Notes under the pieces: generated by a model
Databases searched by the model: none
What the model saw: the letters and a program-made list of their open reading frames with translations, nothing else
Told to the model about the DNA's origin: nothing
Position numbers and translations under genes: made by a program
Part shown: piece by piece, positions 18,186 through 64,000 of the stretch
Position numbering within the stretch: position 1 is the first letter of the stretch
How the letters are laid out: each line of letters begins with the position of its first letter
NCBI GenBank assembly: GCA_010909165.1
Contig: VJWM01000209.1
Location: forward strand, 186,001 to 250,000
Reading direction: 5' to 3'
DNA: 64,000 nt
From: Anthoceros angustus
Lineage: Eukaryota; Plantae; Anthocerotophyta

Positions 18186-18354
18186 TCTAGACCTTAGCCT
18201 TGAGGAACCAAACACGCTATTGAAACTAGAACTAAAACAGCCTCCTTCAAACAGAGGACCTTGGCCTACGAAACTAAACACGAGCAAAACACCTAAGCCT
18301 TGGAGAGGACCACCTGGACTTGAAAAGACAGAATGACAAAAGAACTCCGATGAA

Positions 18355-18385
18355 AGCCATTTATATAGGCCAGCAAACCCTAAAT
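18355..18385 (-). promoter_or_regulatory. Putative TATA box plus telo-box driving the recombinase transcript
   Basis: The minus strand reads TTTAGGGTTTGCTGGCCTATATAAATGGC. The motif is conserved in the inverted copy at 44100-44130. Confidence 0.45.
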
Positions 18386-31841: not shown

Positions 31842-32505
31842 CCGTGCTTGTAGCTGAGGGCAAGCAGATTTTGTTAAGCCCGCAGCAGATCGATCCCTGC
31901 GAAGCTGTCTTTCATGAGCGAGGCTGCAAATCCCGAAGGCTGCCTCACCACTTCCTCAGGCTCCACTTCCCGGGTTCGCACGGACACGACGCTGTTCCCG
32001 AAATAGGACGCCGGGGGCAGGCTGCAGTCGGGATCGGATGAAGACGTCCTGCGCTCCTTGGCATCCACAACAGTGCCGAACGTGCATTTCCCGTTTCCCT
32101 TCGCTTCACTGATACAGATCTGGAGCCTGGCTCTCGTCACACATTGCCACAAGTGCCCGCAAACGCAGGTGACAGTGGAGAAACTCTGGCCACCGGTGTT
32201 CGTTGCAGCAAGCGCTTTGAGCTTCCGGATGCCGGCCTCCGTGTAATGCACGAGCCTGAGCGTTGGAGGGTGGAGGGCCGGCGCAGTGGCAGCCAAGGCC
32301 CGAGCGGTTGCCCCCATGTCACGCGCCCAAAGCACGGCAGGCAGGCCCGGCGGGGTGTGGTCTATGGCCAGGTCCTGGTCGGAAAAGGTCCCGGGCTCGG
32401 CGAACAGCAGCTGGGCTCGGCCATGGTGGCCCCGCCGCTGGTGAAGGCGTCCGACCATGCTCTCAGGAACTGCGATGCAGCAAAGCCGTCCGCCACAGTG
32501 TGCAG
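31842..32505 (-). pseudogene. BAHD acyltransferase pseudogene (partial paralogue of the 57464-59032 gene)
   Basis: Near-identical to 58063-58760 (LHTVADGF...SYFGNSV...IDLLRA), with deletions and a premature stop. It is cut at 32505 by a copia LTR. Confidence 0.9.
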
Positions 32506-35412: not shown

Positions 35413-35429
35413 CAGTGTTTCTCAGTATA

Positions 35430-38400
35430 GGCCTAGGTTTGTCTCCGAACCCCATTTTGGCCCCAACCATCCAGAAATGCACATGTCTCATTTCACTGTT
35501 TTCAGTGATTTGCGAACCCACAGCCCATGCATCCGAGCCCAAAAGAAGACCTAATGTGCCCACCGTCCACACAAATGCCGGACACACCTTTGTACCAAGT
35601 GGCGGATGATCATGACTTATGCTCCAAAGAGTCGGAGTGCCAACGTCCGCACTTATACTCCAAAGAGGTGCAATACATCGGGTTTGGAGAGGGTTGCGTC
35701 AATACTTGTGTAGGCAAGCACTTTCGTTCAAGTTGCTTGTGCACACTTGCCACCGTACCAACACTCACATCAATTCTCTTTTCAAACCCCGTGATTGAGC
35801 AATCCCGGAATACAGATGGCCCCTCAGGTGTCGGAGATAAGCCGCACTTAGATCTGCAACATTGGGCCTTGGAGAATTGGACAAGGTAAAGGATGGTGAG
35901 GCCTCCTCAACCGTTCTTGATCAAACTCTTCAGAGCTTACACTTCTTCTTGTCAAGTCCGTACCGCTTTCAACCTTAATCTATCCATGGGTGGCACATGG
36001 AGCAAGTCAGATCTTAAATTCAAAATCTCCTGGCGAAGCTTGGCTATAGTTCGTCTCTCACCACCTAGCTGCGCCACAGCTATAGTGGGCGTCACAGTGG
36101 GTATAGACAGGTCCTCCTTCAGAGCCTCACTGAAATACTCAGCCATTTGGTCAAAACCCCCACCTCGGGCGACCAGCCCTCTTTCTTCAGATACTCACTG
36201 GCTCTCACTAGGGCTCGCAGTGGCCAGGCAAAATGCTCTCTTATGCTTGTGTTCGACTGCATCCGACAGGCTTTCATTACTCAAGGAAAAATCATCTATT
36301 TTATTTATTTTCTTGCTTCTCTGCAAAACATTGTGAAACATTGTCGTCTTCAAAAGGTTGGCCATTAGAAAACACCATCATACATGTCGAATTTTGGAAA
36401 ATGTAGCTCATCTAGAAACCAAGGCCTATGCATCTATACGTGCATCAAACTCGAATGAGCGGACATTTGGCGCACCAATCAAAGAGATCCAGCAAGTCAT
36501 CGGAAGGGCACATAGAGTAAGGCCAAAAGGTTTTACATGTTGTATACAAAGCGAATGTGGAATATAACATCAACCAACAAATGATTTTCAAAAATAATAT
36601 TCATGACTTTACGCCTAGATACCGGATGATTTACAAATTTTTCAAACCACTAAAAATCAACACTCCATCCTAGTATTGATACGCCTCTAGGTTTGTCTCG
36701 AACCCCATTTTGGCTAACCATCCGAAATGCACATGTCTCATTTCACTTTCGATGATTTGCGAACCCACCCATGCATCCGAGCCCAAAAGAAGACCTAATG
36801 TGCCCACCGTCCGCACACAAAATGCGGACACACCTTTGTACCAAGTGGCGGATGGTGGCACTTATGCTCCAAAAGTGAGTGCCAGGTCCACTTATACTCA
36901 AGAGGTGCAATACACGGGTTTGGAGAGGGTTGCGTCAATACTTGTGTAGGCAAGCACTTTCGTTCAAGTTGCTTGTGCACACTTGCCACCGCACCAACAC
37001 TCACATCAATTCTCTTTTCAAACCCCGTGATTCAGAGCAATCCCAGACGGCAGGCATACCCTGTCTGACCTGGCCCCTCCGTGTCGGAGATAAGCCGCAC
37101 TTAGATCTGCAGCATTGGGCCCGCGGGCGAGAATTGGACAAGGTAAAGGATGGTGAGGCCTCCTCAACCGTTCTTGATCAAACTCTTCAGAGCTTACATT
37201 TCTTCTTGTCAAGTCCGTACCGCTTTCAACCTTAATCTATCCATGGGTGGCACATGGAGCAAGTCAGATCTTAAATTCAAAATCTCCTGGCGAAGCTTGG
37301 CTATAGTTCGTCTCTCACACCTAGCTGCGCCACGGTATGGGCGTCACGGTGGGTATAGACAGGTCCTCCTTGAGCCTCACGAAATACTCAGCCATTTGGT
37401 CAAAACCCCCTCGACGCCCTCTTTCTTCAGATACTCCTGGCTCTCACTAGGGCTCGTGGCGAGCGGATGCTCTCTTATGCTTGTGTTCGATCGCATCCGG
37501 CTTTCATTACTCAAGGAAAAATCATCTATTCTATTTATTTTCTTGCTTCTCTGCAAAACATTGTGAAACATTGTCGTCTTCAAAAAGGTTGGCCATTAGA
37601 AACCACCATCATACATGTCGAATTTTGGAAAATGTAGCTCATCTAGAAACCAAGGCCTATGCATCTATACGTGCATCAAACTCGAATGAGCCGGACATTT
37701 GGCGCACCAATCAAAGAGATCCAACTGCAAGTCATCGGAAGGGCACATAGAGTAAGGCCAAAAAGGTTTTACATGTTGTATACAAAGCGAATGTGGGAAT
37801 ATAACATCAACCAACAAATGATTTTCAAAAATAATATTCATGACTTTACGCCTAGATACCGGATGATTTACAAATTTTTCAAACCACTAAAAATCAACAC
37901 TCCATCCTAGTATTGATACGCCTCTAGGTTGCTTAAGATGGAGTTGTTACAAAGTTTTCAAAGCGCCAAAACAAGCAAGCCATCCTAGCACTAATCGACC
38001 CAAGAGTGCATCCCGGGAAGTTCTAAAGCACCAAAGTCAAGCACCCCATCCTAATCTTGGTCACGACCCGGGTGCTTAATTTTGGAGTTCTTATGCCAAA
38101 ACAAACGGCAGTCCTAGGACTAATCCGACCCAAGAGTGCGTGTCCGTGGAGTTCTCAAAGCACCAAAGTCAAGCACCCCATCCCGGTAATCGATCCGACC
38201 GAGGGTGCTTAATCTCGGAGTTCTTATACCACTGTGTCTATCTCCACCCTTACCCGTCTTATACCAGTGTGTCTATCTCCACCCTTACCCGAGTGGATGT
38301 GTCATGCCGTGTGATACTAATCTCTGCACTTGGGTTTAGTGTTTGATTAGCATTCATTGATCTAATTACTTATCTTTAAGTAAGTAATTAGTGTTAATTA

Positions 38401-40138
38401 ATCTAAAGTGCTTATGTTAATTAAGCGTTGATTAGTATTAATTAATCTAATGTGCTTATGTTAATTAAGCATTGATTAGTGTTAATTAAACATGGTTAGC
38501 AATAGCTAAGTGGATAAGCTCAAGTAATATGCTTTGGCATATTCCTTGCATATTATAGTGTATTCTTAGGATATTTTACGGCATGTCTTTGATGCGATAG
38601 GATATCTTAGGAATATGCCGATGCCATGGTCTAGTATATATAGACCCTTCCATTGAGACAAGCTCGGATCATAGCTTGTCCTCTAGATATGCAATGCAAG
38701 GGTGTTGTGAGGAGGCCAAAGCTATGACTGAGATCGAATGAGCGGACATTTGGCGCACCAATCAAAGAGATCCAGCAAGTCATCGGAAGGGCACATAGAG
38801 TAAGGCCAAAAGGTTTTACATGTTGTATACAAAGCGAATGTGGGAATATAACATCAACCAACAAATGATTTTCAAAAATAATATTCATGACTTTACGCCT
38901 AGATAGGGATGATTTACAAATTTTTCAAACCACTAAAATCAACACTCCATCCTAGTATTGATACGCCTCTAGGTTGCTTAAGATGGAGTTGTTACAAAGT
39001 TTTCAAAGCGCCAAAACAAGCAAGCCATCCTAGCACTAATCGACCCAAGAGTGCATAGGAAGTTCTAAAGCACCAAAGTCAAGCACCCCATCCTGTCTCT
39101 TGGTGACCTGCTTAATTTTGGAGTTCTTATGCCAAAAACAAGCAACCCGTCCTAGGACTAATCCGACCCAAGAGTGCGTATCCGTGGAGTTCTCAAAGCA
39201 CCAAAGTCAAAGCACCCCATCCTGGTACTGATCCGACCCGAGGGTGCTTAATCTCGGAGTTCTTATACCACTGTGTCTATCTCCACCCTTACCCGTCTTA
39301 TACCAGTGTGTCTATCTCCACCCTTACCCGAGTGGATGTGTCATGCCGTGTGATACTAATCTCTGCACTTGGGTTTAGTGTTTGATTAGCATTCATTGAT
39401 CTAATTACTTATCTTTAAGTAAGTAATTAGTGTTAATTAATCTAAAGTGCTTATGTTAATTAAGCGTTGATTAGTATTAATTAATCTAATGTGCTTATGT
39501 TAATTGCACTGATTAGTGTTAATTAAACATGGTTAGCAATAGCTAAGTGGATAAGCTCAAGTAATATGCTTTGGCATATTCCTTGCATATTATAGTGTAT
39601 TCTTAGGATATTTTACGGCATATGTCACGATGCCAGGATATCTTAGGAATATGCCGATGCCAGGGTCTAGTATATATAGACCCTTCCATTGAGGACAAGC
39701 TCAGATCATAGCTTGTCCTCTAGATATGCAATGCAAGGGTGTTGTGAGGAGGCCAAAGCTATGACTCCGAGATCGATGTGTGAGGAATTTGCGTGTTGTT
39801 CTCGTGGGGAGAGTGTGTTTGTGCCACGACGTGCGAGCTACTCCCTCCTGTTGTTACAAGCTATGATCTCGTGTGTGTACACTAGATAGGCCGTACTAGG
39901 CTTAGTATGATCTCAGCTTGTGTATGCTAGGCGATGCTAGGCGGTGCTAGGCGATGCTAGGTGACGCTAGGCGATGCTAGGTGACGCTAGATGATGCTAG
40001 GCCGTGCTAGGCGAGGCTACGCGAGGCGACGCTCGCTCTTTAAGCAAGTAGGCAAGGAACTCTCTAAAGTGTGCCCAAGGCTTGAGGCCTAGAGAGGGGA
40101 CCAAATCCAAGGCCAAGGAGAGGAGGCGAAGAAGCCCA
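35430..40138 (+). mobile_element. Retroelement-like repeat (antisense ORF remnant plus LTR/leader-like DNA) with two overlapping tandem duplications
   Basis: 35430-36686 is repeated at 36686-37928, and 37682-38733 at 38734-39776. It has TTAATTAA-rich blocks, TATATATA at ~38635 and ~39672, and GCTAGGCGAT 10-mers at 39926-40020. It ends in the CCAAGG repeat matching 24060-24305. Confidence 0.5.
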
Positions 40139-43100
40139 GTATTAGGCAGACGCGGGCGTCACGGCCGAGAACGGTCGAGGCCGTGAGGCCCGAACCGTTC
40201 TGCCGTGCGCCCGGCCAGCGCGTCCGTTCAGGCGTAAAGGGCCGATGCAGGGGCCGAGGCCGCCCAGCTTCATTGCGGGGGCGGGGCGGGGTGAACTTGT
40301 TTAGACCGGTGCCTATATCACCCGGCTTATATGTCATTTCTCTCTCTTACAAAGAATTTACCCTTCACTCTTTGTATCATTTCGTTTTCAATCCTTTTAC
40401 ACAATAAAAGGATTATCATCCTTTATCGTAATTAGGCTCTAATCAAAATAGTTTTGGTTAAATCACACATATTCTATTGGAGTAGATGGAGTGTAATATG
40501 GTTCGGTCGTCCGTCTCTTGAATAGTACTTTTGAGCTGCTGATTGTATGGTCCGGATAAATGTATTATCATTTGAATATTTCATCAAGCGAGAATATTTA
40601 CGCAATTTAAACCATTGTCGAATTCATATATAAAACTTATCTATTTTTAACTTTAGTACTCACCTCAAAGAGTGAAAACAACTCGTTTTGATTCTCCGAT
40701 AACTACAAACAAAAAGTAAAAGTAATTAGTCATTTACCTCCATTTCAATTCGGAGAAGATCTTTCTTTGCATATACCTTTTGACAAGCGTTAAACACGTC
40801 TTTGTGAAGATTCCCCACTCGGAAATGTGATCGTATGTTACGAAGAAACATAAACATTAGAATTTTTTGGAATGCAAGCGGATATTACCTTTCAAACGAT
40901 GTACCTTTTGAATGTTTTAGTTGTCTCTGGTTCTTCCATGAGAGACAACAAGTCTGTCGTTTTCAACTCCTTATTTTCAATTGCTGCCCTATCTCGCATT
41001 CAATGCATCAATTACATTACATAGAATTATATGTAATGAAAATAATAGAGAAAAGAGAAGTTATCGCTTACTTGCTTGGATCTGCATCTTTTCGAATGTT
41101 GGGTTGGACCCATCTTCATTCAAGATGGGTCAGATTGCTCTTTTAGACTATGCTCCCAAATTGCATACTTATTTTTAAAGTCTTGAAAAGTGGTGGATAT
41201 TGAAAATTGCTCATCCACTTTCCAAACTCGGTGAACTCAAGTGACGGCCCGTAAGTTGGTCCATCCTCCTCAAGTCATCAATTTTTCTCTTTTGCACGAT
41301 CAAAACCAAAATCATTACTTTCTTAAACCAAAATCATATTAATGCACATTATATACATAATACATTTTGTATACGATTGGAGATGGCTGCGTTGTCAATG
41401 TTGTTGTCAATCTTATCGACTTTGTCCTTTATGTTTTTGACGGCACTTGTTTTCCGGCGATACGTAATGCCAAGTTATAAGAAGGTCAATGTGAAGAAGC
41501 AAAGAAGGTATGAATGTATTAATTTGATTACCTCCGATCTTGCTGGATTGAACTTTGATATCCCTCCAACATTGTTTGCATTGAAATCGGTGTCCATTAA
41601 ACCTTTCCACAAGTGTACGCTTCACCCAATTGAGTCGTTGTTCGAAGGTTCTTTTGATATCCTGCAGAGATAAATTTAGGGTTAAGATTTTGGATTTGAG
41701 CATACTTAGATCAAGTTTATGAAATAAAGAAAAGTGCTTACCTTCTTTATCTTATTCAACTGGGCAGGCATCTCGCAAAGATGCTTAAGGTCTTGTTTGT
41801 CCATCACAGAGAACATTGTGTGCTCGCAGAGGACTGCAACCCACGGGTTTTGTTAGACTCTGACCAACGAGAACATACAGGACTAACAGCAATCATTTTT
41901 CCTGAATACCTTTTTCTACGATCTTTCTGATCTCCAGCAGTGGTGGTTCAAACTCTGCATTAGCGTCATATCCTGGATCCCCATGGGTGGGAAGTAATTT
42001 GTCTGAGTGACGCTCACAGGGTGGCGTCATGTAGTTGCTGTCTGCAGGGGGTTGACACAATAGATATTAGTAAATGTGAAAGCAAAATAAGAAACGTATA
42101 ATACGAATAACAATCAAGTACCTTCTTGGATTTGAAAATCGTTATTGCTTCCGTTCTCAGATTCCATCCTGATTCAAAAAAGCCATCAGTACACTAATCA
42201 TAGTGGAGAGCTACCGTCAAATCAGACTGAACAAGACGCATCGCGCACAAAAGAGCAACAAGTTGAGTAATTGGACCGGACGTACTTACACTAGAGTGGC
42301 GCCTTCTTGCGTGACCTTTGGCTGCAGCTCGAATTCCTGAAAGAGGAGAGGGGCGTGAGTTTACAAAGTGCATAACACATCCGCGTGTTGCGGCATCCGC
42401 GTTTTGCGGCATGCCGCCACTCAACGGCGCGTGTTGCGGCATGCCGCTACTCAACGCCGCGTGTTGCGGCATGCCGCCACTCAACGCCACGTGTTGCGGC
42501 ATGTCGCCACTCAAGCATCTACTAGGCGTTGACTCGACTGTAGCGGTGACGTCAAGCATGCGGTGGCGTCCGCGCGTGGGCGCACTCGCCTTATACGTCC
42601 CATGCGCAACTGCATCTCCACCCAACTACCATGCCCGCGACAACATTTGACAAGCATACTTCTTTAACTACTGCATGGGTGATGGAGGGTAACTTACAGT
42701 TGTGGTTTTTCGTGTGGTTGGACCTCGGACACCACACTAAGGCCACGTGTTTCCGGTTTCGTGATCTAGGAAGGCAGCGAAGATTAAGCCGATGCATAGC
42801 GTCAGCGGTTCGGAGACAACACTATCGAGGACACGTAAGCTTATTCTTGATCGTGATCGGACTTTGAAAAAGGAAACAAGCAAATGGAAGTAAGGTGAGT
42901 TTGGCGACTTGGCCTTTATTCTGTTACTTAGCTGGACCACTGTGGTTTTGTGCGCTATGTCTCGATATACGCAACAAATCACTTGATAAGCAAGGTTGAA
43001 GCGGCAAACTCACGATGCGATAACGAATCCAGAGCGAGGCGGAAGCAAAAGCCAGCGAGGCATGGCGTTGGCAATTGAACGAAAACAAAAGAAAAGACAT

Positions 43101-48005: not shown

Positions 48006-50051
48006 AGACTAGAGACCGAGGCCCGGGGCGCACCTATGGATAATGTCCAAAGTGCGAGCTCCCAAGGTCCTCCGATCGACGAAAATCTCATGTTGTCCCA
48101 TCGGGAGGCGGCCATGAATGACGACAAAGGTAGCTGATGTGAGGGTAGTTGTTGCATACCTTGCCAAGCTTTGAGGTGACATTGCTCTCGGGTCGTGAAT
48201 AGCATGCTTGGCCCCAGCGCTGTATGCGCCGGCGGGGTGTAGTCTATGCGAATCGCGCACGATTCCCAACGCATACGGGTCCCACTACCGAACCGTATGT
48301 CGTGCGTCAATATTTTATTTGGAGTATTCCAGCGGAAGGTGAGCTATGACGTCTGGGTCCGCTGAAGTCTGGGGCTCTGGCTTGTTTCTACTGCAAGGTA
48401 TCCAATGAAGTTGGATTCCTGATATGAGAGTGCGACTTTGTCTTCATGGACTTCTCCCCAGCTCATCAAATTGAGCAATAAGTAAGAGCGATCGTGCTTT
48501 GGTTGCAATATTGTATGCAACCAAAAGCTATCAGACTTAGTTCTTCATTAACTATATTTGCTTAGTTCTTTCTCATATATAATTTCTTGCTGGTCCTAAT
48601 TAAGTATAGAGAATGAATTCAAATTAGACGCACCGTTTGTAAATAAACTTGAACTTCAAGTTTCTTGAGGCTCTTGTGCAAACTTGAATATCAAGCTCTA
48701 TCTCTTCAGGCTGGGTTGCAGAGACATTTGTGAATGGTGTTTCAGAAAACTAGACAATCTCGTTAAAGCTAACATGAAGTACTGTTTTGGTAGAACTCTT
48801 GCCGGCTATTGTTGAAGCAATGTTTTGGTACCGCTGGTACTTAGTGTAGAGCTTGTCTTGCTTGGATATACAATATATGTAGATATGTAAGTTCTCTCCG
48901 CTTTAGATCTCTTGGAGCCGTGGTCAGCACGAAACAGTTTGTATTCCAATAACATAAAATGCCTACTTGCAATCCTTCACAGTATACGGGTGAGAGACTT
49001 GTACCTTGAACTAGCTAAATCTTTCAGCAAAGTGTGGGCCGTCATGCTTTCTGTATCTAGTGCTAAGTCCTCAAGCAAATCAATGTCTGCAATTGAATGT
49101 CAACCGTTTAGTTGACAGGATTGTCTTCAACTGTATAACCTAGAATTGATGTTATTGGGTACAGACATATAAATCTCCCCAGTCACTGCAACACAAAGGA
49201 CTCTATAAACGTAAAGTTTGGATGCTGAGTAAGTAGCACATTATAGTAAATTGATGTAGTCAGATTCAACAAATGAAGGAGCATGCATAGCAATCTGGAC
49301 AGGCCTATTACACCGCTACTATTGTTGCACTGCGTGCCTGCTTTTGGCACAACGTGCACAAAGAAACTATACTATACTTGAACTTGCTGAAAGTGGTACG
49401 AACTCCTAGTGAATCCATTTCCGTTTTTATCCATTCAAGTGTGTTGTCACACCGAAATAAGCGCGCACAATGCTTATAACGGAACGGGCTTGGAAGTAAC
49501 GGCCTTTAAATATGATTACTGGAAACAGCAAAACTGAAGCTAAATAAATGAAAACCGTTTAAGTTTTAGAACACGGTTCTGAAACCCGCGTTTTCGCGGC
49601 ACATGGATTGATTCATCGCACATGTCGCATGCATGGACATGGAGGCAATGACCGTATACGGACCGCATACGGGCTGTATGGGATGGAGGTGCCGACGGAG
49701 GCTGGCCGGACGGTGGGGCCAATCTAGTTTTGAAGAATTCCTTGCATCGCTGCTACTGGGGGAGGGACTGCAGCTGCGTCTGCACGCTTGAAATGTATTC
49801 CAGTTGTTTGAAGTATCGCAGGGCAGCCACGGACGCGACAATGGTTGTGGGGATTGGAGTGGCGCTTGCGGCTACGAAAGGATGAATCGATCGCACGCCT
49901 CAACTTGCCTTCACACTTCACAGCTCTTGACGCTGAGCATTTTGTGATCCCCACACCTCATGAAGCTGAGCATTGTGTGAAGTGGGAGGAGTGCGGCTGC
50001 CTTTGCATTCTTGAGTTTGAATTCCGTTGTTGGAAGAATCGGAGGGCAGCC

Positions 50052-52313
50052 ATGGAAGTGACATTGGGTGTAGAGATTGGAGTGACGCTTGCAATGGCGG
50101 TGCTGGCCGTGGCCTGGCCAGTGTGGAGGTACTGGGAGCGGAGGGGGATGTGGGCGCCCAAGGGCTCCAAGCAGCTGCCGGGGACCATGGGCTTCCCGCT
50201 GCTGGGAGAGACTATGGAGCTGATGGGCTACTTCAAGATCGGGGATCTGGAGACATTCACGACAAAGCGCTTTCGCAAGTATGGCGATGTGTTCAAGTCG
50301 CACCTGTTGGGCAGTCCGTATGTGTTTTCACGGGCGCCGAGGCGGCCAAGCTCTTGCTCTCAATGGCACAAGCTGGTACAGGCGCACCAGTTCCTCCCGC
50401 GAGGCAGCTGGTGGGCAAGGTCGCTCCTCAATGTGCACGGCCCCACGCACAAGTTCTATCGCAAAATTCTCAACGAATCCTTCATGGGCGAAGGCATTAG
50501 GAAGTATCTGCCGGTGTCGGAGCAATCGGCTCTAGAGACCCTCAGTTCCTGGAACTGGGCGACGTCCCCGTCATGAGACACGACATGGGCAAGGTGCGTG
50601 CACCAGGAATGGGCCACTCTTACCGTTTGTCTGCAATCTAATTGCAATGTTTGTGCAGAGCTCGTGATGTTTGCTAACTGGTATCTGCTCACGGTGCGCA
50701 GTTCGCTTATCATGTGATCGTGGGACTGGTGCTGAGCTGGGGTCCTGGTTCAGTGCGTGACAGGAGCTTGGAGCTCACCAAAACAGTGAGTACCAGCTTG
50801 ATCACGGTGCCCATCAATCTTCCTGGATTCGCCTTTCACAAGGCCATGCAGGTGGGAATTCGTTCAGGCCCAATTTGGAGCACAGGTGTCCAATTTCTCC
50901 CAGGGCTTGCAATGGGCCGCAATAAATCTAACAGTGCAAGTGGACTGGGCGTGCAGGCAAGAAAGGAGCTGGGTAAAATGTTCGACACCGAATTTGCGCT
51001 GAGAAGGAGCGGAAAATTTGTTCGCAGCGACCTGCTGAACGAAATGATGAAGGCAGTCGACCCCGATTCTTCAAGCGACAAGCCTGCCCTGGACGACGAG
51101 CAGCTGAGGGACAATCTGCTCACCATGGTCGTTGCTGGCTTTGAGACCACCGCCAGCACACTCACCTGGCTTGCCAAGCTGCTACATGAGAATCCCAGCG
51201 TCAAGGAGAAGCTGCTGGTGAGCCTGGCCCCGGGGCTATATCACAGACGTCGTCCATAGGAATCGAGATTGGTTTGGAACAGCTTGGATCCAAGCGAGCC
51301 CAACCTTGGCGTTTGGTTTTTGTGTTTGTGACTGTAGGCTGAGCATTTGGCTCTGAGAAGAAACAAACAAGCTGGAGAGGCACTGACATGGGCGGATCTC
51401 GGCCAACCGATGGCCTACACCTTGAAAGTGAGACTCGGATCCTCAACATCCTCCAACCTAGTAGTGGCCCAATACTCACTGGAATCTGGCGTAAGCTAAG
51501 ATCCATCTGTCTTGTCTCATGTGTGCATGCAGGTGATCAACGAGGCACTCCGAGTGTCTGCTCTCATTTTCTGGTTGCATCGACAGGTCAAGGAGGACTT
51601 TACTTTCAACGGTATGTATGCTGCACCTGGCTGGCATTGGCAACCGTTCAGATTCCTTCCCTACTCCAAGCGGGGAGTTCTAACATGGGTGATCACTGTG
51701 CTTCATTTCCGTTATGATATTCCCCAAGCTTTCTCACTATCTGACACACACATGTGCCACCTGCAGGATACCACATTCCTAAAGGCTGGAACGTTGTGTT
51801 TGACACTCACAACTTACACCATAGTTCAGAAATCTTCCAAGACCCAGAGATCTTCAATCCCTCTCGCTTCGATGTAAGAGCCTGATGCTTGAATTCAACA
51901 CTAGAATCATTACAGACGTCTCCGAATCATAGACAACGAACAACATCTTGGGAGTTATCTTGTGACACTGCGTTCTGATGCTACCAACAGGTGCCACCGA
52001 AGCCCTTCACCCTGCTGGCGTGGGAGGTGGAAGCAGATTGTGCCTTGGGAAGGAGCTGGCACTAATGAACATGAAAGTGATGTTGCATCACATGATGCTC
52101 AAATTCAGGTGAGTCCCCATAATTCTTCTGCAATAAATAGTTCACAAGTCATTTACATATTATCCTACATGCTTCTTGGCTAACCGACGGGTGCTGAGTT
52201 GGTGTTGAAACAGGTGGACAGTATATGAGCCAGACACTGGCCTCGACATTTCGGGTCTGCCATGTCCCAATAGCGGTGTCCCCATAAGGATCGAGGCTGT
52301 TCAGGACTATTAA
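50052..52313 (+). CDS. Cytochrome P450, CYP85 clan, paralogue A (several frameshifts: pseudogene or sequence error)
   Basis: TM anchor, LPGTMGFPLLGET, YGDVFKSHLLG, I-helix VAGFETTAST, VINEALR, FNPSRF and heme GGGSRLCLGKEL, separated by ~100 bp GT-AG introns. Confidence 0.9.
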
Positions 52314-52905
52314 TCTGCCAACCGAGCTATGATAAGATTGCACATGGAGTCCTGTGGCTCCTTCCAAACAGCCACAATCCCGGAGGACAGTAGGCAGCAG
52401 GAGCGCTCACTCCCATAGCCGCACGATGTGCTCCAACATATTAAACCCTGTATGTTAAAGCCGTGCAGCAGCTCGCCGCTAATGTAATACATATGGGCTT
52501 GCCGTAAACCTTGGGATAAAGTGATCCTGCACTCGAAGGATATGGGCTCAACTATGGGTCCAACCGTAGTGCGTCAATATTTTATCCAGTGGATTGTGGC
52601 AAAAGGAGAGCTATGACGTCTGGGACTCTGGAGTCTGTCTGGGTCCGTCTGGCAGTTCATTCCAGTTTTAGCAAAAGGTGTGGTACGACGTCTGCGTCCC
52701 TCTGGCAGTCCCATTGCGGTCGCATCTTTCGACGGCAGTGTATTCAGAAAGTTGGAGATTCTGAGAAAAAAGCTGCAGCATCTGCTTGCGGCTTGACAAG
52801 TCCACACTTCACCCGGAAGTCAGCAATGTGCGAAAGCAGGAGGGGTTGCTGCGGCATGGCATTCTTGAATTTGCATTCCGTTCTTCTCAGAATCGCAGGG
52901 CAGCG

Positions 52906-53638
52906 ATGGACGTGACGTTGGCTGTGGAGATAGGGGTGGCTCTTGCGGTGCTTGCTGTGGGCTGGCCAGTGTGGAGGTACTGGGAGCGGAGGGGGATATG
53001 GGCGCCCATGGGCTCGAAGCAGCTGCCGGGGACCATGGGCTTCCCGCTGCTGGGAGAGACGATGGAGCTCATGGGCTACTTCAAGAGCGGGGATCTGGAG
53101 ACATTCACGACAAAGCGCTTTCGCAAGTATGGCGATGTGTTCAAGTCGCACCTGCTGGGCAGTCCGTATGTGTTTTCAGGGGCGCCGAGGCGGCCAAACT
53201 CTTGGTCGCCAGCGAGGACAAGCTGGTGCACGCGCACCAGATCCTCCCCGGAGGAAGCTGGTCGGCGAGGAGTCCATGCTCAATGTGCACGGTCCCAGGC
53301 ACAAGCTCTATCGCAAAATGCTCAACGAGGCCTTCATGGGCGAGAGGATTAGGAAGTATCTGCCGTGGTGGAGCAAGCGACTCTCGAGACGCTCGGTTCC
53401 TGGAAGCTGGGCGACGTCCCGTCGTCAGGCACGACATGGCCAAGGTGAGCGCACCAGAATTGGGCCACTCTTGCCGTTTGTGCGCAAATTGCAATGTTAG
53501 TGAGCTTGGGATTGTAATGGGTGCTGAGTTGGTGTTGAAACAGGTGGACAGTAGGCCAGACACTGGCCTCGACATTTCGGGTCTGCCATGTCCCAATAGC
53601 GGTGTCCCCATAAGGATCGAGGCTGTTCAGGACTATTA
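52906..53638 (+). pseudogene. Chimeric P450 fragment (exon 1 of paralogue B plus last exon of paralogue A) created by a 1.33 kb tandem duplication
   Basis: 52188-53518 is repeated at 53519-54835. The junction microhomology is GGGT. Confidence 0.85.
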
Positions 53639-54224
53639 ATCTGCCAACCGAGCTATGATAAGATTGCACATGGAGTCCTGTGGCTCCTTCCAAACAGCCA
53701 CAATCCCGGAGGACAGTAGGCAGCAGGAGCGCTCACTCCCATAGCCGCACGATGTGCTCCAACATATTAAACCCTGTTAAAGCCGTGCAGCAGCTCGCTA
53801 ATGTAATACATATGGGCTTGCCGTAAACCTTGGGATAAAGTGATCCTGCACTCGAAGGATATGGGCTCAACTATGGGTCCAACCGTAGTGCGTCAATATT
53901 TTATCCAGTGGATTGTGGCAAAAGGAGAGCTATGACGTCTGGGACTCTGGAGTCTGTCTGGGTCCGTCTGGCAGTTCATTCCAGTTTTAGCAAAGGTGTG
54001 GTACGACGTCTGCGTCCCTCTGGCAGTCCCATTGCGGTCGCATCTTTCGACGGCAGTGTATTCAGAAAGTTGGAGATTCTTTGAGAAAAAGCTGCAGCAT
54101 CTGCTTGCGACTTGACAAGTCCACACTTCACCCGGAAGTCAGCAATGTGCGAAAGCAGGAGGGGATTGCTGCGGCATGGCATTCTTGAATTGCATTCCGT
54201 TCTTCTCAGAATCGCAGGGCAGCG

Positions 54225-56454
54225 ATGGACGTGACGTTGGCTGTGGAGATAGGGGTGGCTCTTGCGGTGCTTGCTGTGGGCTGGCCAGTGTGGAGGTACT
54301 GGGAGCGGAGGGGATATGGGCGCCCATGGGCTGAAGCAGCTGCCGGGGACCATGGGCTTCCCGCTGCTGGGAGAGACGATGGAGCTCATGGGCTACTTCA
54401 AGAGCGGGATCTGGAGACATTCACGACAAAGCGCTTTCGCAAGTATGGCGATGTGTTCAAGTCGCACCTGCTGGGCAGTCCGTTTTTCAGGGGCGCCGAG
54501 GCGGCCAAACTCTTGGTCGCCAGCGAGGACAAGCTGGTGCACGCGCACCAGATCCTCCCCGGGAGGAAGCTGGTCGGCGAGGAGTCCATGCTCAATGTGC
54601 ACGGTCCCAGGCACAAGCTCTATCGCAAAATGCTCAACGAGGCCTTCATGGGCGAGAGGATTAGGAAGTATCTGCCCGTGGTGGAGCAAGCGACTCTCGA
54701 GACGCTCGGTTCCTGGAAGCTGGGCGACGTCCCCGTCGTCAGGCACGACATGGCCAAGGTGAGCGCACCAGAATTGGGCCACTCTTGCCGTTTGTGCGCA
54801 AATTGCAATGTTAGTGAGCTTGGGATTGTAATGGGTAGTTGCTGACGGTGCGCAGTTCTCTTATCATGTGATCGTGGGACTGGTGCTGAGCTGGGGTCCT
54901 GGTCCGGTGCGTGACAGGGGCCGTGAGCTCACCGAAACGGTGAGAAACAACTTGCTCGCGGTGCCCATCAATCTTCCTGGATTGGCCTTTCACAAAGCGA
55001 TGCAGGTGCCAATTCGTTCGAGGCCCAATTTGGCGCACAGTGTCCAATTTCTCCTTGCCCTGGGGCCGCAATAAATCTAACAACGCAAGTGGACTGGGCT
55101 TGCAGGCAAGAAAGGAACTGGGCGAAATGTTCGACACCGAAATCGCGCTGAGAAGGAGCGGGAAAATCGTTTGCAATGACCTGCTGAGTGAAATGATGAA
55201 GGCAGTCGACCCCGATTCTTCCAGCGACAAGCCTGCCCTGGACGACGAGCAGCTGAGGGACAATGTGGTCACCCTGATCGTTGCTGGGTTTGAGACCACC
55301 ACCAACACACTCACCTGGCTAGTCAAGCTGCTGCATGAGAATCCTAGCGTCAAGGAGAAGCTGCTGGTGAGCGTGGCCCCGGGCTGTCACAGACGTCGTC
55401 CATAGGAAACGACATTCGTTTGGAACAATTTGGATCGAAGCCAACTTCACCTTGAGGTTTTGTTTTCCTGCTTGAACTGTAGGCGGAGCATTTGGCAGTG
55501 AGAAGAAACAAACAAGCTGGAGAGGCACTGACATGGGCGGATCTCGGCCAACCGATGGCCTACAGTGAAAGTGAGACTCAGATACCTCAACATTCTGCAC
55601 CCTAGTGCCGCACAGCTACTCACTGGAATCTGGCCTCCAATTAAGATCCATCTGTCTTTGTCTCATGTACGTGTGCCTCCAGGTGATCAACGAGGCACTG
55701 AGTTTCTTCTCTCGCTTTCTGGTGGAATCGACAGGTCAAGGAGGACTTCACATTCAACGGCATGTATGCTGCACCTGGCATCGCCAACCGTTCAGATTTC
55801 TTCCCTACTCCAAGCAGGAGTCCTAACATGGGTCACAGACTAGTGCTTGATTGCCGCAATGATTTGCAGAAGCTTTCTCCGTGCCTGACACATGTGCCAC
55901 CTGCAGGATACCACATTCCTAAAGGCTGGAGCCTTGTGCATGACACTCACGACTTGCACCATAGTCCAGAAGTCTTCCAAGACCCGGAGACGTTCGATCC
56001 CTCTCGCTTCGATGTAAGCAGCCTGATGCTTGAATTCGGCATTAGAAATCATACAGCCATCTCCGACTAATAGACATCCAACAACATTTTGGGAGTAACC
56101 TTTTGACACTCTGCGTTCCTTGTCTACCAACAGGTGCCACCGAAACCTTACACCCTGCTGGCATTTGGAGGTGGAACCAGATTGTGCCTTGGGAAGGAGC
56201 TGGCACTAATGGACATGAAAGTGATGTTGCATCACATGATGCTCAAATTCAGGTGCGTCTCCATTCTTCTGCAATAGCTCACAGGTCATCTACAATCCCC
56301 ATCCCCAAATATGCTTCTTGGCTAACCGACGGTGCCGACCTGGTGTCGAAACAGGTGGACAGTAGATAAGCCAGACACTGGCCTCGACGTTTCAGGTCTG
56401 CCATGCCCCAATAGCGGTGTCCCCATAAGGATCGAGGCTGTCCTGGACTATTAG
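54225..56454 (+). CDS. Cytochrome P450, CYP85 clan, paralogue B (several frameshifts)
   Basis: Same exon structure as paralogue A, with IVAGFETTTNT, VINEAL, FDPSRF and AFGGGTRLCLGKEL. Confidence 0.9.
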
Positions 56455-57220
56455 TCTGCCAACCGAGCTATGACAAGACTGCACACGGCCTTGCTGTGGA
56501 TACTATGTGAAACTTGGGGTTTCAATTACTTTCCCAACACAGACGGTGCCATGCCCCAAGCAGGATACATCTGAAACTGTGAGTGTGTGCATGGCAGGTA
56601 TTAGTCTCAATACTCAAACGGTGAAGGCCCTTCTTGCTCAGGCTGGAGAGCACCCCTTTGTGTAACCAAGGGAGTGTACAATGTGTAACCAAGACTAATG
56701 ACCAGGCTGCACAGAATGGATATATCTATGGGGGCCTGAGTTGAAATGGTCATTCACCTACCTGTATGGCATCATAGCTATTGCCGACGCTGTAGAATAT
56801 GGTTCCGATGGCCAGGCACAAAGCACGCAAGATACATTGCAAGACGTAGCCAGTAGTAACCTACGTGTCTGGACATGTTACCTTCGAGCAGTATCTGCAG
56901 CATTTTGAGCAAGAATGGATGACTTGTACTTGCTCACTAGCAGTTCCCCTCGTAATGCGGTGGACATAGCTTTAAGAGCATCCGAATCTTGAGGATCAGC
57001 GGGGTCATGGTCATCCCAGCCAGAGTGTCCAGAAGGGTGGATTTGCTCAAGGCCCCATGATGTAGCAGTCATTCCTTATTTCGGCTTTCGTGTACGCCTT
57101 GGTGTCATGATGGCATTGCCCATCTATGCCGCCGTCGCGTCATGATGCCCGTCTGTGACGTCTGCAAGTGATGATGGCATTGCCTGTCTGTGCTTCTTGG
57201 TGTGATGATGCTCGTCTGTA

Positions 57221-57304
57221 TCTCGATTTGTGCGTGTCATCCTTGCATAGGGGCCATGCTAATCTTCTCTGTATCATTCCATTATATGCGATGTGTGGAA
57301 GCAC
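57221..57304 (-). ncRNA. U6: U6 snRNA pseudogene, 3'-truncated
   Basis: The minus strand reads ...TGGAATGATACAGAGAAGATTAGCATGGCCCCTATGCAAGGATGACACGCACAAATCGAGA (ACAGAGA box, AGC triad, ISL). The 3' oligo-U end is missing and no upstream USE/TATA was seen. Confidence 0.85.
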
Positions 57305-57463
57305 AATGTCCGTCTATTCTGCCTTCGGCTCCCAAAACATTCTGATACTGGTAATCCCTGCAGCGAATCGTGACTTGTGATGCTGATCCCAATTGCAATC
57401 TGAGGGGAGTGTCACAGTGTCTGTGAGAGCAGTAGCGCATCCGCGAAATTTGGCAGCCTTGAG

Positions 57464-59032
57464 ATGGGCATGCGCGATGTGGTAACCACCATGGTGGTTC
57501 CGGCAGAAGACCCAGAGAAATCACACGAGAACCAGAGGTGTGAGATGTGCAACCTGGACCACCTCATGCCCAACGTGTACGTGCCCCTTCTCCTGCTGTT
57601 CGATGAAGCCCCGAGATCGGGAATTGCGGGCCTGGTGGAGGAGCTCAAACAGTCGCTGGCTAGGGTGCTGGTGCCCTTCTATCCCATGGCGGGCAGGGTG
57701 GTGGAGAGGGCGGGCCAGCCGCCGCATCTGGTGTGCAACAATGCAGGTGCCATCTTCACCTCCGCGCACTTGGACGCTCCCATGAGCCAAGTGTGTGGAG
57801 CCGGCGTTCACTTCCAGCCGGTCCCACAAATCCAAGGGATCACATCGGTGAGGCACAAAGTTGAGATTGCGGAGGCGGAGATGGAGGTGGGGAAGCCTGC
57901 CCTCGTGGTTCAAGTAAGCCTCAGCCTCTGAGTGTTGTGGGATGTCGTTCAAAGGAAATCTTCCATGAGACCCGGTGCTGTGGAATTCAGGTGGCGGGGC
58001 TGCGGCATATGCATGCAGGTGACCGGATTTGAGTGCGGCGGCGTGGCCCTGGCTGTCAACTGGCTGCACACTGTGGCGGACGGCTTTGCTGCATCGCAGT
58101 TCCTGAAAGCATGGTCGGACGCCTGCACCGGCGGCAGGGCCACCACGGCGACGCCTGACCACGGCCGGGCCCAGGTGCTGAAGAATGCGCACTTCTTCGC
58201 CGAGCGCGGGACCTTTTCCGACCAGGACCTGGCCGCAGACCACACCCCGCCGGGCCTGGCTGCCGTGCTTTGGGCGCATGACATGGGGGCAACCGCTCGG
58301 GCCTTGGCTGCCACTGCGCCGGCCCTCCACGCTCCAATGCTCAGGCTCGTGCATTACACGGAGGCCGGCATCCGGAAGCTCAAAGCGCTTGCTGCGGCGA
58401 ACACCGGTGGCCAGAATTTCTCCACTGTCACCTGCGTTTGCGCGCACTTGTGGCAGTGTGTGACGAGAGCCAGGCTCCGGATCTGTAAAAGTGAAGCCCA
58501 GGGAAACGGGAAATGCACGTTCGGCACTGTTGTGGATGCCAAGGCGCGGAGGACGTCTTCATCCGACCCCAACTCCACCCTGCTCCCGGCGTCTTATTTC
58601 GGGAACAGCGTCATGTCCGTGCGAACCCGAGAAGTGGAGCCTGAGGAAGTGGTGAGGCAGCCTTTGGGATTCGCAGCCTCGCTCATCAAAGACAGCTTCG
58701 CAGGGATCGATCTGCTGCGGGCTTACCAGTATCTGCTTGCCCTCAGCGACAAGCACGGACCTTGGAACATCACCGCGATGCCACATGGTGTACCCCACGA
58801 CTTCTTCACATCTTCCTGGTATCGATTTCCGCTCTACGATCTACACTTTTGTTTCCCAGCCCAGCCTGTGCTAGCGATTTCCAACTCCAGGCCCTCTCCC
58901 CGTCGTGATGGCTTCGCTTTGTTGCTGCCCAGCCCGCTTGGCCCCAATAACCTCACCGCAATGCTCATCGCCAACGCTGCTGTCATGGCCAACCTTTTCT
59001 TGGACCAAGAGTTTCTGGAGTATGCTTACTGA
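57464..59032 (+). CDS. BAHD acyltransferase (2 exons: 57464-57913, 58019-59032)
   Basis: LKQSLARVLVPFYPMAGR, the conserved Q-intron (LVVQ|VT), HxxxD motif HTVADG and YFGN. The DFGWG position reads DLHFCFPAQP. The reading frame is intact. Confidence 0.95.
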
Positions 59033-59687
59033 CCTCAGCGGACATACGGAGCAGAGCTACTAGCTACTTTACCCCACACCAAGCTAGCAGTTGCAGACAT
59101 GCGCATAACACGACAGGAGATGGTTAAGGGAACAGAATGTTCACCCATGTCCCCCTGCAAGTCCAAGGTTTTGGCTGTCAGTCCAGTCAAGAAGAACCAA
59201 CCGCCCAGGTCTCCAAGAGCATCATCCCTGTTAGTTCGCCTGCACCCACAAACCAGAAGAGGGTGAGTCAGCCGTCTCAGAGTCAGTGCAACAAAAACAG
59301 CAGGAGCCTCTCAAGATGTTTAACCCAAAAGCACTACCTACCCCCACCACTGCTACAATCCAAGCTAAGCGAGTGATATCCAGCTCCCCTAAAGCTCAGA
59401 AACCTGCTAAGTTGGCTCGCAAGGCAGCGACCAAAAGTCCCTCTCCTCAGCTTGAGTCTCGTCCCCCTTCAGCTAGCAGTCCTGCACCTGTCAGCACCAA
59501 GAAAGTTAGGTTTGCTATGGCCAGCTGCTTCCTTCATGAACGCAGCTAGGGCAGCCCGGGGCTTCTCTGCGCGATCCCTTAACCAGGCCTGTCTCAGTTC
59601 CCAAACAAAATATAGAATGTGTAAAATTTCTTCATGTAATATCCACAAAAACTTCATATTGAATGTTTTCTTTGCTCGGTTGGCAGA

Positions 59688-61931
59688 CTAGTAGTCGTGA
59701 ACAGCCTCGATCCTAATGGGAACACCGCTATTGGGGCATGGCAGACCCGAGACGTCTCGCCCAGTGTCTGGCTTAGCTACTGTCCACCTGTTTGGGCACC
59801 GGTGGGTTAGCCAAGAAGCACGTATGTGGGGACGGGAATTGTAATTGACTTTGTGAGCTAATGAGCCCGGGACGCACCTGAATTTGAGCGTCATGTGATG
59901 CAACATCACTTTCAAGTTCATTAGTGCCAGCTCCTTCCCAAGGCACAATCTGGTTCCACCTCCAAATGCCACCAGGGTGTATGGCTTCGGTGGCACCTGT
60001 TCGTAGGCACGGAACGCAGTATGTCACAAGATAACTTCCATGGGAAGAAATGGTTCGTTGTCTATGCTTCGGAGATGACTGTAGTGATTTCCAGTATTGA
60101 ATTCAAGCATCAGGCTGCTTACATCGAAGCGAGAGGGATTGAACCTCTCCGGGTCTTGGAAGACTTCTGGACTGTGGTGCGAGCCGTGAAGGTCTAGCAT
60201 AAGGTTCCAGCCTTTAGGAATGTGGTATCCTGCAGGTGGCACATGTGTGTCAGGTGGAGAAATCATTTTGGGAATCAAGCAATGTGACCCATGTTAGGAC
60301 TTGGAGTAGGAAAGAAACCTGGACGGTTTGCAAATGCCAGGTGCAGCATACATACCGTTGAATGTAAAGTCCTCCTTGACCTGTCGATGCAACCAGAAAA
60401 CGAGAGAAGACACTCGGAGTGCCTCGTTGATCACCTGCATGCACATGAGACAAAGACAGACGGATCTTAGTTTACGCCAGATTCCAGTGAGTAGTGGGCC
60501 ACAACTACGTTGGAGAATGTTGAGGGATCCGAGTCTCACTTTCAAGGTGTAGGCCATCGGTTGGCCGAGATCCGCCCATGTCAGTGGCTCTCCAGCTTGT
60601 TTGTTTCTTCTCAGAGCCAAATGCTCAGCCTACAGTTGCAAACAGAAAAACCAAAAGCCAGGATGGGGCTCGCTTGGATCCAAGCTGTTCCAAACCAATT
60701 TCGTTTCCTATGGACGACGTAGCTGTGATATATCCCCGGGGCCAGGCTCACCAGCAGCTTCTCCTTGACGCTGGGATTCTCATGCAGCAGCTTGGCAAGC
60801 CAGGTGAGTGTGTTGGTGGTGGTCTCAAAGCCAGCAACGATCATGGTGAGCACATTGTCCCTCAGCTGCTCGTCGTTCAGGGCAGGCTTGTCGCTGGAAG
60901 AATCGGGGTCCACTGCCTTCATCATTTCGTTCAGCAGGTCGCTGCGAACAACTTTCCCGCTCCTTCTCAGCGCGAATTCGGTGTCGAACATTTTGCCCAG
61001 CTCCTTTCTTGCCTGCACGCCCAATCCACTTGCGTTGTTCGGTTTATTGCGGCCCATCGCAAGCCTTGGGAGAAATTGGACACCTGTGCTCCAAATTAGG
61101 CCTGGAATGAATTCGCACCTGCATGGCCTTGTGAAAGGCGAATCCAGGAAGATTGATGGGCACCGTGAGCAAGCTGGTACTCACTGTTTTGGTGAGCTCC
61201 AAGCTCCTGTCACGCACTGGACCAGGACCCCAGCTCAGCACCATTCCCACGATCACATGATAAGCGAACTGCGCACCGTGAGCAACTACCAGTTAGCAAA
61301 CATCACGATCTCCGCGCAAACATTGCAATTAGATTGCAGACAAACGGTAAGAGTGGCCCAATTCTGGTGCACGCACCTTGGCGATGTCGTGTCTCATGAC
61401 GAGGACGTCGCCCAGTTTCCAGGAACTGAGCGTCTCGAGAGCCGATTGCTCCACCACCGGCAGGTACTTCCTAATGCTTTCGCCCATGAAGGTTTCGTTG
61501 AGAATTTTGCGATAGAGCTTGTGCGTGGGGCCGTGCACATTGAGGAGCGACTCCTCGCCCACCAGCTTCCTCGTGGGGAGGAACTGACGCGCCTGTACCA
61601 GCTTGTCATCGCTTGAGAACAATAGCTTGGCCGCCTCGGCGCCCCTGAAAAACACGTACGGAGTCCCCAACAGGTGCGACTTGAACACGTTGCCATGCTC
61701 GCCAAAGCGCTTGATCCCGAACGCCTCCGGATCTCCGATCTTCAAGTAGCCCATCAGATCCATCGTCTCTCCCAGCAGCGGGAAGCCCATGGTCCCGGGC
61801 AGCTGCTTCCAATTGGACCCCTTGGGCGCCCTTATCCCTCTCCGGATCCTCTCGCGCTCCCAGTACCACCACGCTGGCCAGGCCAAAGCCAGTGCTAGCA
61901 CCGCAAACGCCACTCCTATCTCCACACCCAT
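59688..61931 (-). CDS. Cytochrome P450, CYP85 clan, paralogue C (apparently intact)
   Basis: LPGTMGFPLLGET, IVAGFETTTNT, VINEALR, PERFNPSRF and AFGGGTRLCLGKEL. No frameshifts were seen in the exons. Confidence 0.95.
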
Positions 61932-62564
61932 GGCTACCCTCCGATTCTTTCAACAACAACGGAATTCAATGTAAATAATGCAAAGGCAACTGCTCGCCCT
62001 TCCACTTCACGCAATGCTCTTCAGCTGTGGCTTGTGAACACTAAGTTGCAAGCAGAGATTCCGGATACCGGATTCCAAAGCGAACTGCCGACAAAAGCTC
62101 TCTCGTCGGTATTGAGGGGTCCTGCAAGTGTGAGGGATTCTGACAAGGTGCCGATGCCGCAAGCCCGTCCCCCTCCTGTGGGACCGTTAGCCGCCGGGGA
62201 ATGTGGAATGTGCGTTTACGGCCTCTTTCTGGCGGGGCCATATGTGCGAGGAGAAAGAAAGGCGCGTCCTTCCAAGAGTAGCAGAAAATAGAATGTGCGG
62301 GGCGTGGAGCAATGGAGGATGTTTTGATAGACTAGGAAGTGGGAAACTGTCCAAAGGCGAAGGCAGGTATACCTGGCAGTGCATATCCTGTACGCCGATA
62401 CAAACATGAACGCTGTTGCCGGATATGCTGGTGGGTATACACAGTCCACATCATCATTGACTATCATGGTCATCGTTTAATTGTTTGCCAATCCCATCCG
62501 ACTCTGCTCTCCGGATCCGGATCCGGAACGACGGATAGCCCCCACCGGATTCAGCTGGCTCGAC

Positions 62565-64000
62565 ATGGCGGCAGAGGGAACGGAATTGTGGTTGGCACTC
62601 ATCTTGGGCCTCCCGCTGCTCCTCTTGGCCTGGATCTTCGCCTTCTCCCGATCGCTGCAGCGACAGGCGGCCCGAAACGGCGCCGCTGCGCAAGTTCCTG
62701 GCAGCTTCTGGCAGCTGCCTCTGGCGGGGGACACCATTGAGTTCTTGCGCGCTGGCTTTCCCGATGACTTCCTCCTGCCTCGGATAGAGCGGTGAGGGCC
62801 CATGCCCCATGTGCAATCACCAATGCACACTAGCTTCACAATGTGTGTGTCTGCTACCCTCACCATGCCCGCCTTCTGGAGCTGACCGTGCAGTGTGGCA
62901 TTTGCAATTGGGCCTGCAGGTACGGTCCGGTTTTCAGGACGCACCTGCTGGGTCGCCCCACGGTGTGCGTCACCTCCGCGGAGGCCGTCAAGTTCGTGTT
63001 GCAGTCGCCTAGATTGTTCACCAATGCTTTCCCCAATCCGGCGCGGGTGCTGTTTGGCGAGCATTCCATCTTCCACGTGGAGGGAGAGGAACACAATCGG
63101 CTTCGAAAAATCATCCACGCTCCCCTCTTTCCAGAGGCTCTCAAACACTTCCCTGCGCAGGTGGACAGCATTGTCAGCGGCTTGTTTGAGGACTGGGGGT
63201 CCGCTGAGGTGATCTCTTGCGTAGAGGAACTCAAAACGGTCAGCTCCTGCCCATATCCTCATCTGCACCGGGTCTCGAATTCCATTTTCTTGTCATTCTC
63301 TACATCTGCACCCCTGAGCCAGATCTTGACTTCGCTCCTCCCCGGCCCTGCAGTTCGCTTTCCGCGTTGGCCTGAAAATCTCCTGCGACACTTTAACAGC
63401 GGCAGAGAAACGCGACGTGCTTGCCTTGTTTCACGAATTCGAAGCAGGGCTCATGGCCGTACCACTTAGGCTTCCGGGGACAACGTACAGCAAAGCTTTG
63501 ATTGTAGGGGCCTCCTTCTTGGAAACCCCACGCCCACCGTCCGAATTCCTGCTCAATGCCTGCGTATGAACCATTTAACAGTTGTGTCACATGTATGGCT
63601 GCAGGCACGTGACAAGATCATCGCGATCCTGGAAAAGGTGATTGAGGAGAGGCAGGCGGAAAAGGGATCAGTAGAGCGCAATGACCTGCTTCAGGCCTTC
63701 CTTTCCTGGGAGAAGAATTCGCAGAAATTGGACAAACGTCAAGTAGCAGACAATATGCTCAGTATCCTGCTCGCATCCCATGATACTGTGGCAGGAACCA
63801 TTAGTCTGGTCATCCGGAATTTTTGTATCTATCCTTCACTTTACCAGGAAGTGCAGGTAGATGGCTGCTTTCATTTTTGTTCTCTGAACAACATCATCCT
63901 GCTCCTCAAGCAGGCCTGCCATCATCACTGATTGCATAATTTTGGATGCATGTAGGAGGAGCAGGATGCAATTGCAAGAGCCAAAGTTTCCGCGAGCGAT
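62565..64000 (+). CDS. Divergent cytochrome P450, CYP85 clan (runs off window end)
   Basis: TM anchor, PGSFWQLPLAGDT, YGPVFRTHLLGRPTV, LFGEHSIF..EGEEH..LRK and I-helix DNMLSILLASHDT. It has an extra intron after exon 1 compared with paralogues A-C. Confidence 0.9.

Follow-up and report, generated by a model that had tools for sequence, protein, structure and literature searches.

The last 14 kb of a 64,000-nucleotide stretch of the hornwort Anthoceros angustus genome carries an array of cytochrome P450 genes in company with genes of other enzyme families. The stretch (GenBank assembly GCA_010909165.1, contig VJWM01000209.1, positions 186,001 to 250,000 of the forward strand) is called the window here, and all positions are those of the window. 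Three full-length P450 paralogues, A, B and C, whose DNA is about 85% alike, share the 14 kb with an acyltransferase gene of the BAHD family and with a distinct P450, D. In a self-BLAST of the window the paralogues appear as homologous blocks, three in number and each about 2.4 kb long (49951-52350 and 54121-56488 on the plus strand, 62019-59651 on the minus strand), which are 83-86% identical with their introns included. A first-pass annotation had described three close P450 paralogues within 14 kb, a BAHD gene among them, and a distinct P450 placed head to head with C at a distance of 633 bp. The self-BLAST blocks, the BAHD gene found between B and C with the Pfam Transferase family (PF02458) on both of its exons, and the start codons of C and D confirm this arrangement. 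The coordinates are collected in Table 1. As assembled, the intact genes at the locus are only C, the BAHD gene and the visible 331 residues of D.

The eight-exon model of C was read by eye from the minus-strand copy, and its exons were then projected onto A and B. The exons of C match the Pfam p450 family and the catalytic core is complete, with the I-helix motif AGFETT, the ExxR motif as EALR, the PERF motif, and the heme loop FGGGTRLCLG. D also matches Pfam p450. Its five visible exons contain no frame break, and the last third of the gene falls outside the window; the I-helix region, ASHDTV, is visible, and the other core motifs lie past the window end.

Expression data came from the assembled contigs of four small public runs over 57400-63399, which report presence, not co-expression. 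All seven introns of C coincide with joints of spliced contigs that come from paralogues or orthologues in runs X1, X2 and X3. Introns 1 and 2 of D match joints in contigs of about 91% identity from X2 and X3, which derive from a related organism. Since the spliced contigs reproduce every intron of C and introns 1 and 2 of D, the gene models are sound and members of these families are transcribed.

Table 1. Features of the P450 array and of the neighbouring inverted segment, in window coordinates.
Feature	Position	Strand	Structure and state
P450 A	50052-52313	+	8 exons projected from C; splice sites all GT-AG; broken as assembled
P450 A exons 1-4	50052-50593, 50702-50851, 50957-51217, 51338-51427	+	projected from C
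P450 A exons 5-8	51533-51611, 51767-51873, 51991-52108, 52214-52313	+	projected from C
Tandem duplication, 1.33-kb unit	52189-54836	+	units 52189-53522 and 53519-54836
P450 B' (partial copy)	52906-53447		orphan exon 1 only
Stray P450 last exon	53538-53645
P450 B	54225-56454	+	8 exons projected from C; broken as assembled
BAHD acyltransferase	57464-59032	+	exons 57464-57913 and 58019-59032; 487 aa; intact; between B and C
P450 C	59688-61931	-	8 exons, 486 aa, 1461 nt; intact; start codon 61931
P450 C exons 1-4	61931-61377, 61268-61119, 61012-60752, 60629-60540	-	introns GT-AG
P450 C exons 5-8	60434-60356, 60229-60123, 59996-59878, 59787-59688	-	introns GT-AG (all 7 of the gene)
C-D divergent intergenic region	61932-62564		633 bp between start codons 61931 and 62565
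P450 D (visible part)	62565-64000	+	exons 62565-62791, 62920-63238, 63354-63503, 63605-63856, 63956-64000; start codon 62565
MDR-superfamily reductase	28458-29999	+	exons 28458-28718, 28841-29106, 29299-29420, 29536-29618, 29703-29999; 342 aa; intact
BAHD pseudogene fragment	31842-32505	-	89.6% identical to 58064-58758 (695 nt); truncated, frameshifted
Segment apparently inverted	27216-47867		holds the reductase, the BAHD fragment and retrotransposon open reading frames

The array bears several marks of local rearrangement. First, a unit of 1.33 kb, in which intergenic DNA separates a P450 last exon from a P450 first exon, is duplicated in tandem. Its products are a fourth, partial P450 copy, B', which is an orphan first exon, and a stray copy of the last exon. 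One open reading frame in this region extends from 52971 to 53639. Second, A is a mosaic when compared with C. Exons 2-5 are 95-99% identical between the two genes (50702-51611 against 61268-60356) and the rest is 83-86% identical. Such a patchwork suggests that gene conversion took place between paralogues in inverted orientation, 8-10 kb apart.

The relationships of the P450s were examined with single exons as search queries; the joined models of C, D and the BAHD gene were used only in local alignments and in the tree. The exon-wise search gave CYP120, CYP725A4 (taxadiene 5-alpha-hydroxylase) and CYP90B1 as the nearest solved structures of C and D. The nearest named proteins are Ginkgo CYP7005C1-3, CYP707A-like proteins, CYP716, CYP90A and Marchantia CYP815A1, all of the CYP85 clan, and by this kinship both C and D are assigned to that clan. 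C and D are 27% identical to each other and have three intron positions in common. At 27% identity they belong to different families, and the earlier call of two types of CYP85-clan P450 agrees with this distance and with the nearest structures and named sequences.

Over about 440 residues, C is 38.0% identical to CYP7005C1/C3 (442 residues) and 38.6% identical to CYP7005C2. By the CYP nomenclature rule, a family takes in proteins with at least 40% amino-acid identity to its members, and C falls under this line for CYP7005. In a quick maximum-likelihood tree C grouped with CYP7005C and two unnamed metagenomic proteins, with a Shimodaira-Hasegawa-like approximate likelihood ratio (SH-aLRT) support of 98, and D joined no named family. 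C is thus either a sister family to CYP7005 or a borderline member of it. The best match to exon 1 of C in an exhaustive protein search was 46% identical, that is, no orthologue was found. A word-based protein search with the same exon returned no match; it sees only proteins of 0.55-1.75 times the query length, in a collection that seems to lack this genome, and so says little. The closest relatives of C that were found are encoded by two Logan contigs of SRR33208241, L001 and L002. The L001 protein is 45-49% identical to C and its gene is without the first three introns of C; the L002 protein groups with C in the tree. No BAHD gene lies beside these relatives on the two contigs, but the contigs are only 4-5 kb long.

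The BAHD gene retains the catalytic HxxxD motif as HTVAD at residues 167-171. Its intron, in phase 0 after a Gln and 17 residues before HxxxD, occupies the position usual for the family. The best solved-structure matches are the clade-V-like enzymes agmatine coumaroyltransferase (7DTP) and HCT (4G22), with E values of 1e-16 to 1e-13. The HxxxD motifs align, and the total length and intron position fit, but the similarity is low, and the second signature differs. HFCFP, encoded at 58844-58858, aligns with DFG-GG of 7DTP and DFGWG of 4G22. No other reading frame of the gene restores DFGWG. Run X1 matches the window exactly at 58787-59167 and at 59403-59531, and because this independent contig shows no difference over 58787-59167, the loss of DFGWG is real. 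A protein-cluster look-up of the BAHD protein returned only generic Transferase clusters, and the word-based search with exon 2 gave no match under the same length limit, so it too says little.

The part of the window before the array is rich in transposon sequence and rearranged. A transposable element of about 12 kb is present in two copies in the self-BLAST. One is contiguous (11557-23830); the other is in two pieces, one direct (24308-27215) and one inverted (47867-40187). Comparison of the split copy with its contiguous sister places breakpoints near 27215 and 47867, and supports an inversion of the segment between them. Inside the inverted segment, long open reading frames of 403 and 196 residues at 33723-35554, with a gag-type zinc knuckle and integrase-like sequence, suggest a Copia-type retrotransposon.

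The same segment holds two enzyme-related sequences. One is the second BAHD copy of the first-pass annotation. It is present in the inverted block, yet not as a full copy: it covers only about residues 166-397 (PF02458 match at 31874-32458) and is a dead gene, a pseudogene. The other is a five-exon reductase, which lies 20 kb from the array, behind transposons. It had been called ETR-like. The gene is an intact member of the MDR superfamily, but its best solved relatives, searched with exon 2 only, are NDUEG3, NADPH:quinone reductase and VAT-1, and a Pfam ADH_N match falls below the cutoff. It thus looks like a quinone oxidoreductase/VAT-1 type rather than specifically an ETR. When the inversion is undone, the reductase stands head to head with A, its start 1.2 + 2.2 = 3.4 kb away, as had been proposed. 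A short tandem repeat array with units of about 85-130 nt, 90-94% alike, lies directly downstream of the reductase at 30283-30775.

The explanation that we prefer, and to which we give about an even chance of being right, is a birth-and-death tandem array of a lineage-specific CYP85-clan P450 family related to CYP7005, with two neighbours of other tailoring families. C is the one copy in the array that is intact, A and B are broken as assembled, and B' is an orphan first exon. Growth would have come from local duplication, gene conversion in patches, insertion of transposons and a single inversion of 20 kb; tandem arrays abound in this genome. The BAHD gene inside the array is intact but atypical in its motif, and D, an unrelated CYP85-clan P450, stands divergent to C. 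The A. angustus genome has an expanded CYP family and 9.8% of its genes are in tandem arrays (PMC7027989). Like the ordinary P450 tandem arrays of that genome, this locus is clearly built by local duplication; unlike them, it has a gene of a different enzyme superfamily in its midst and a divergent second P450 family at its flank.

By analogy with the nearest characterised relatives, C, and any working sister copy, may oxidise a terpenoid skeleton, most likely a diterpene. D could add a second oxidation, and the BAHD enzyme, if active, could acylate a hydroxyl group. The Ginkgo CYP7005C enzymes, members of the CYP85 clan, oxidise levopimaradiene and their genes adjoin the diterpene synthase gene GbLPS (PMC9436924). 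A review reports that triterpenoids are absent from hornworts and that hornwort terpenoid chemistry is little known (PMC13364417); a triterpene scaffold is therefore unlikely.

Several observations weigh against this explanation. A and B may be dead, which would leave an array with one working copy. The HFCFP sequence in place of DFGWG may mean that the BAHD enzyme has reduced activity or none. The identity of C to CYP7005C lies below the 40% family line, so that transfer of function from those enzymes is weak.

The co-location of these genes raises the question of a metabolic gene cluster. A plant biosynthetic gene cluster is taken here as a set of adjacent, non-homologous genes of one pathway that are co-regulated. 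Side by side in the 14 kb are three or more biosynthetic genes, which represent at least two enzyme classes (the A/B/C family, D and the BAHD gene). With two enzyme superfamilies and three distinct families, the locus corresponds to the loose operational definition of a candidate cluster. An open reading frame for a scaffold enzyme (terpene synthase, cyclase or polyketide synthase) is found nowhere within the 64-kb window, as the first-pass annotation had also concluded.

Clusters of the thalianol type in Arabidopsis combine an oxidosqualene cyclase with CYP708 of the CYP85 clan, CYP705 and a BAHD enzyme, and are defined by co-expression. The hornwort locus resembles them in having a CYP85-clan P450, a BAHD gene and further oxidoreductases in a transposon-rich, rearranged region. 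It differs in that it has no cyclase, and that contig presence stands here where co-expression stands there. A second comparison is the GbLPS cluster of Ginkgo biloba, with CYP7005C1/C3 and CYP867 (PMC9436924). Among named proteins C is closest to CYP7005C1/C3, and both loci have tandemly duplicated CYP85-clan P450s in a non-angiosperm. The differences are an identity below 40%, the lack of a terpene synthase in the window, and the presence of a BAHD gene and a second CYP85-clan family that is not CYP867.

It is possible, though we hold it only tentatively, that the locus is a true biosynthetic gene cluster, in which C (with A and B if these are really intact), D and the BAHD enzyme would work successively on a common scaffold, the MDR reductase taking part or not, to give an oxidised, acylated diterpenoid. 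Within 7 kb (57464-64000) the locus brings together tailoring enzymes of three distinct families, and the 633-bp region is a divergent promoter region common to C and D. The nearest characterised relatives of C belong to a diterpenoid gene cluster, and before the inversion the reductase would have faced A at 3.4 kb. In addition, contigs about 91% identical to the BAHD gene, the C-family genes and D occur together in the same samples of both X2 and X3. Against this stand the missing scaffold gene and the fact that presence in one sample differs from co-expression. By our own estimate, about one chance adjacency of a BAHD gene and a P450 is expected per genome, the P450 family being large and tandem arrays common.

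Run X1 also speaks against a cluster. No contig for D was found in X1, and the region where the BAHD gene and C lie tail to tail is represented there only by a 3' piece of low depth (5-7). The abundant P450 contig of this run is a spliced molecule of 1609 nt at depth 85, about 91% identical to C and aligned to 59887-61809. Its loose end codes for the N-terminal residues of A, which made A a possible source. It agrees with A at no more than 24 of 36 diagnostic sites, however, and has no gaps at the deletions of A, which excludes that assignment. The contig comes from a fourth, intact, A-like paralogue outside the window, and the strong P450 signal of X1 thus comes from elsewhere. Across 62000-62399, within the divergent region, no contig covers the window in the public runs compared.

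The first-pass annotation had gone on to propose a candidate cluster for an oxidise-reduce-acylate pathway. Its family calls and the loose cluster definition hold. The pathway stays a hypothesis: of the three paralogues two are broken in the assembly, the BAHD protein is without DFGWG, the reductase is 20 kb off, and the scaffold enzyme is missing from the window. Co-location makes these genes a testable candidate and is not evidence of one pathway.

The state of A and B bears on a further possibility. In A, frame-breaking deletions occur near 50325, 50367, 50396, 50420 and 50553 in exon 1 and near 52020 in exon 7, in the heme loop. Exon 1 of B has deletions of 1, 7 and 1 nt, which fall inside the error-prone duplicated unit. 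Outside that unit B has a 2-nt deletion in exon 4 (55565) and another in exon 5 (55700). The latter takes out the ExxR Arg; the same exon has a GC donor, the sole non-GT donor. That A and B are plain pseudogenes was the first reading of these breaks, and it was softened by the indel-error signature of the assembly.

This signature is seen throughout the recent repeats. Between the two 1.33-kb tandem units there is 1 substitution against 16 indels, and many of the indels fall in homopolymers. In all other recent repeats of the window, indels are 2-3 times as many as substitutions, for example 18:7, 41:19 and 93:60, among the repeats 2966-5211, 20376-23830, 35433-39776, and 19951-22114 against 40187-42424. 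The comparison of the BAHD gene with its old fragment gives an ordinary ratio, 40 substitutions to 3 indels. The indel excess in recent repeats is the mark of unpolished long-read errors. It fits the way in which the A. angustus assembly was produced, with wtdbg from Nanopore reads and with Pilon polishing (PMC7027989). Because of this excess, frame breaks in repeated genes here are not readable as pseudogenisation without the raw reads. A and B are broken as assembled, and either biology or assembly error may be the cause.

Decay of the locus is nevertheless a reading with evidence behind it. A and B would be true pseudogenes, the BAHD enzyme would be inactive, and only C and perhaps D would work, each alone, in a relic that has no current pathway. 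The eight breaks that lie outside the duplicated unit are confined to A and B (2367 nt), with none in C, the BAHD gene and D (3918 nt); were errors uniform in rate, such a split would by our own calculation arise with a probability of about 0.0004. Several of the A and B breaks differ from homopolymer slips, and key sites are hit: in B the ExxR Arg and the GC donor, in A the heme loop. Of the two BAHD copies, the second is dead, and the motif loss in the first is confirmed by the independent contig. On the other side, A and B contain no nonsense codon across 486 codons in the frame of C. The pairwise ratios of nonsynonymous to synonymous substitution rates (dN/dS) among A, B and C are 0.42-0.54, the level of constrained duplicates, and indicate moderate purifying selection on the P450 copies. 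The BAHD frame is open for 487 codons, and the assembly has the indel errors just described. With these in view we consider decay unlikely. That the 1.33-kb duplication, with B' and the stray last exon, is absent in the organism, leaving three copies and not three and a half, is suggested by the single substitution among so many homopolymer indels in a Nanopore/wtdbg/Pilon assembly, yet a very recent true duplication, left unpolished since short reads map to both units, would look alike, and we regard such an artefact as very improbable.

The locus also lends itself to a broader conjecture. The 14-kb block could form one end, that of the tailoring genes, of a cluster exceeding 200 kb whose product would be an oxidised and acylated diterpenoid peculiar to hornworts, and CYP7005-like enzymes could be ancestral diterpene oxidases common to bryophytes, ferns and Ginkgo. 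We think this improbable as a whole. No report of a hornwort metabolic gene cluster was found in the literature searched.

As it stands, candidate neighbourhoods of this sort turn up in numbers in any plant genome, and the locus is one among them. In practice it is useful mainly for its clean gene models and as a warning on how frame breaks in this assembly are to be read. It also offers a small, directly testable gene set, consisting of C, D and the BAHD gene. If the CYP7005-like P450s of this locus do act on diterpenes, the family whose enzymes begin ginkgolide synthesis would extend back as far as the bryophytes.

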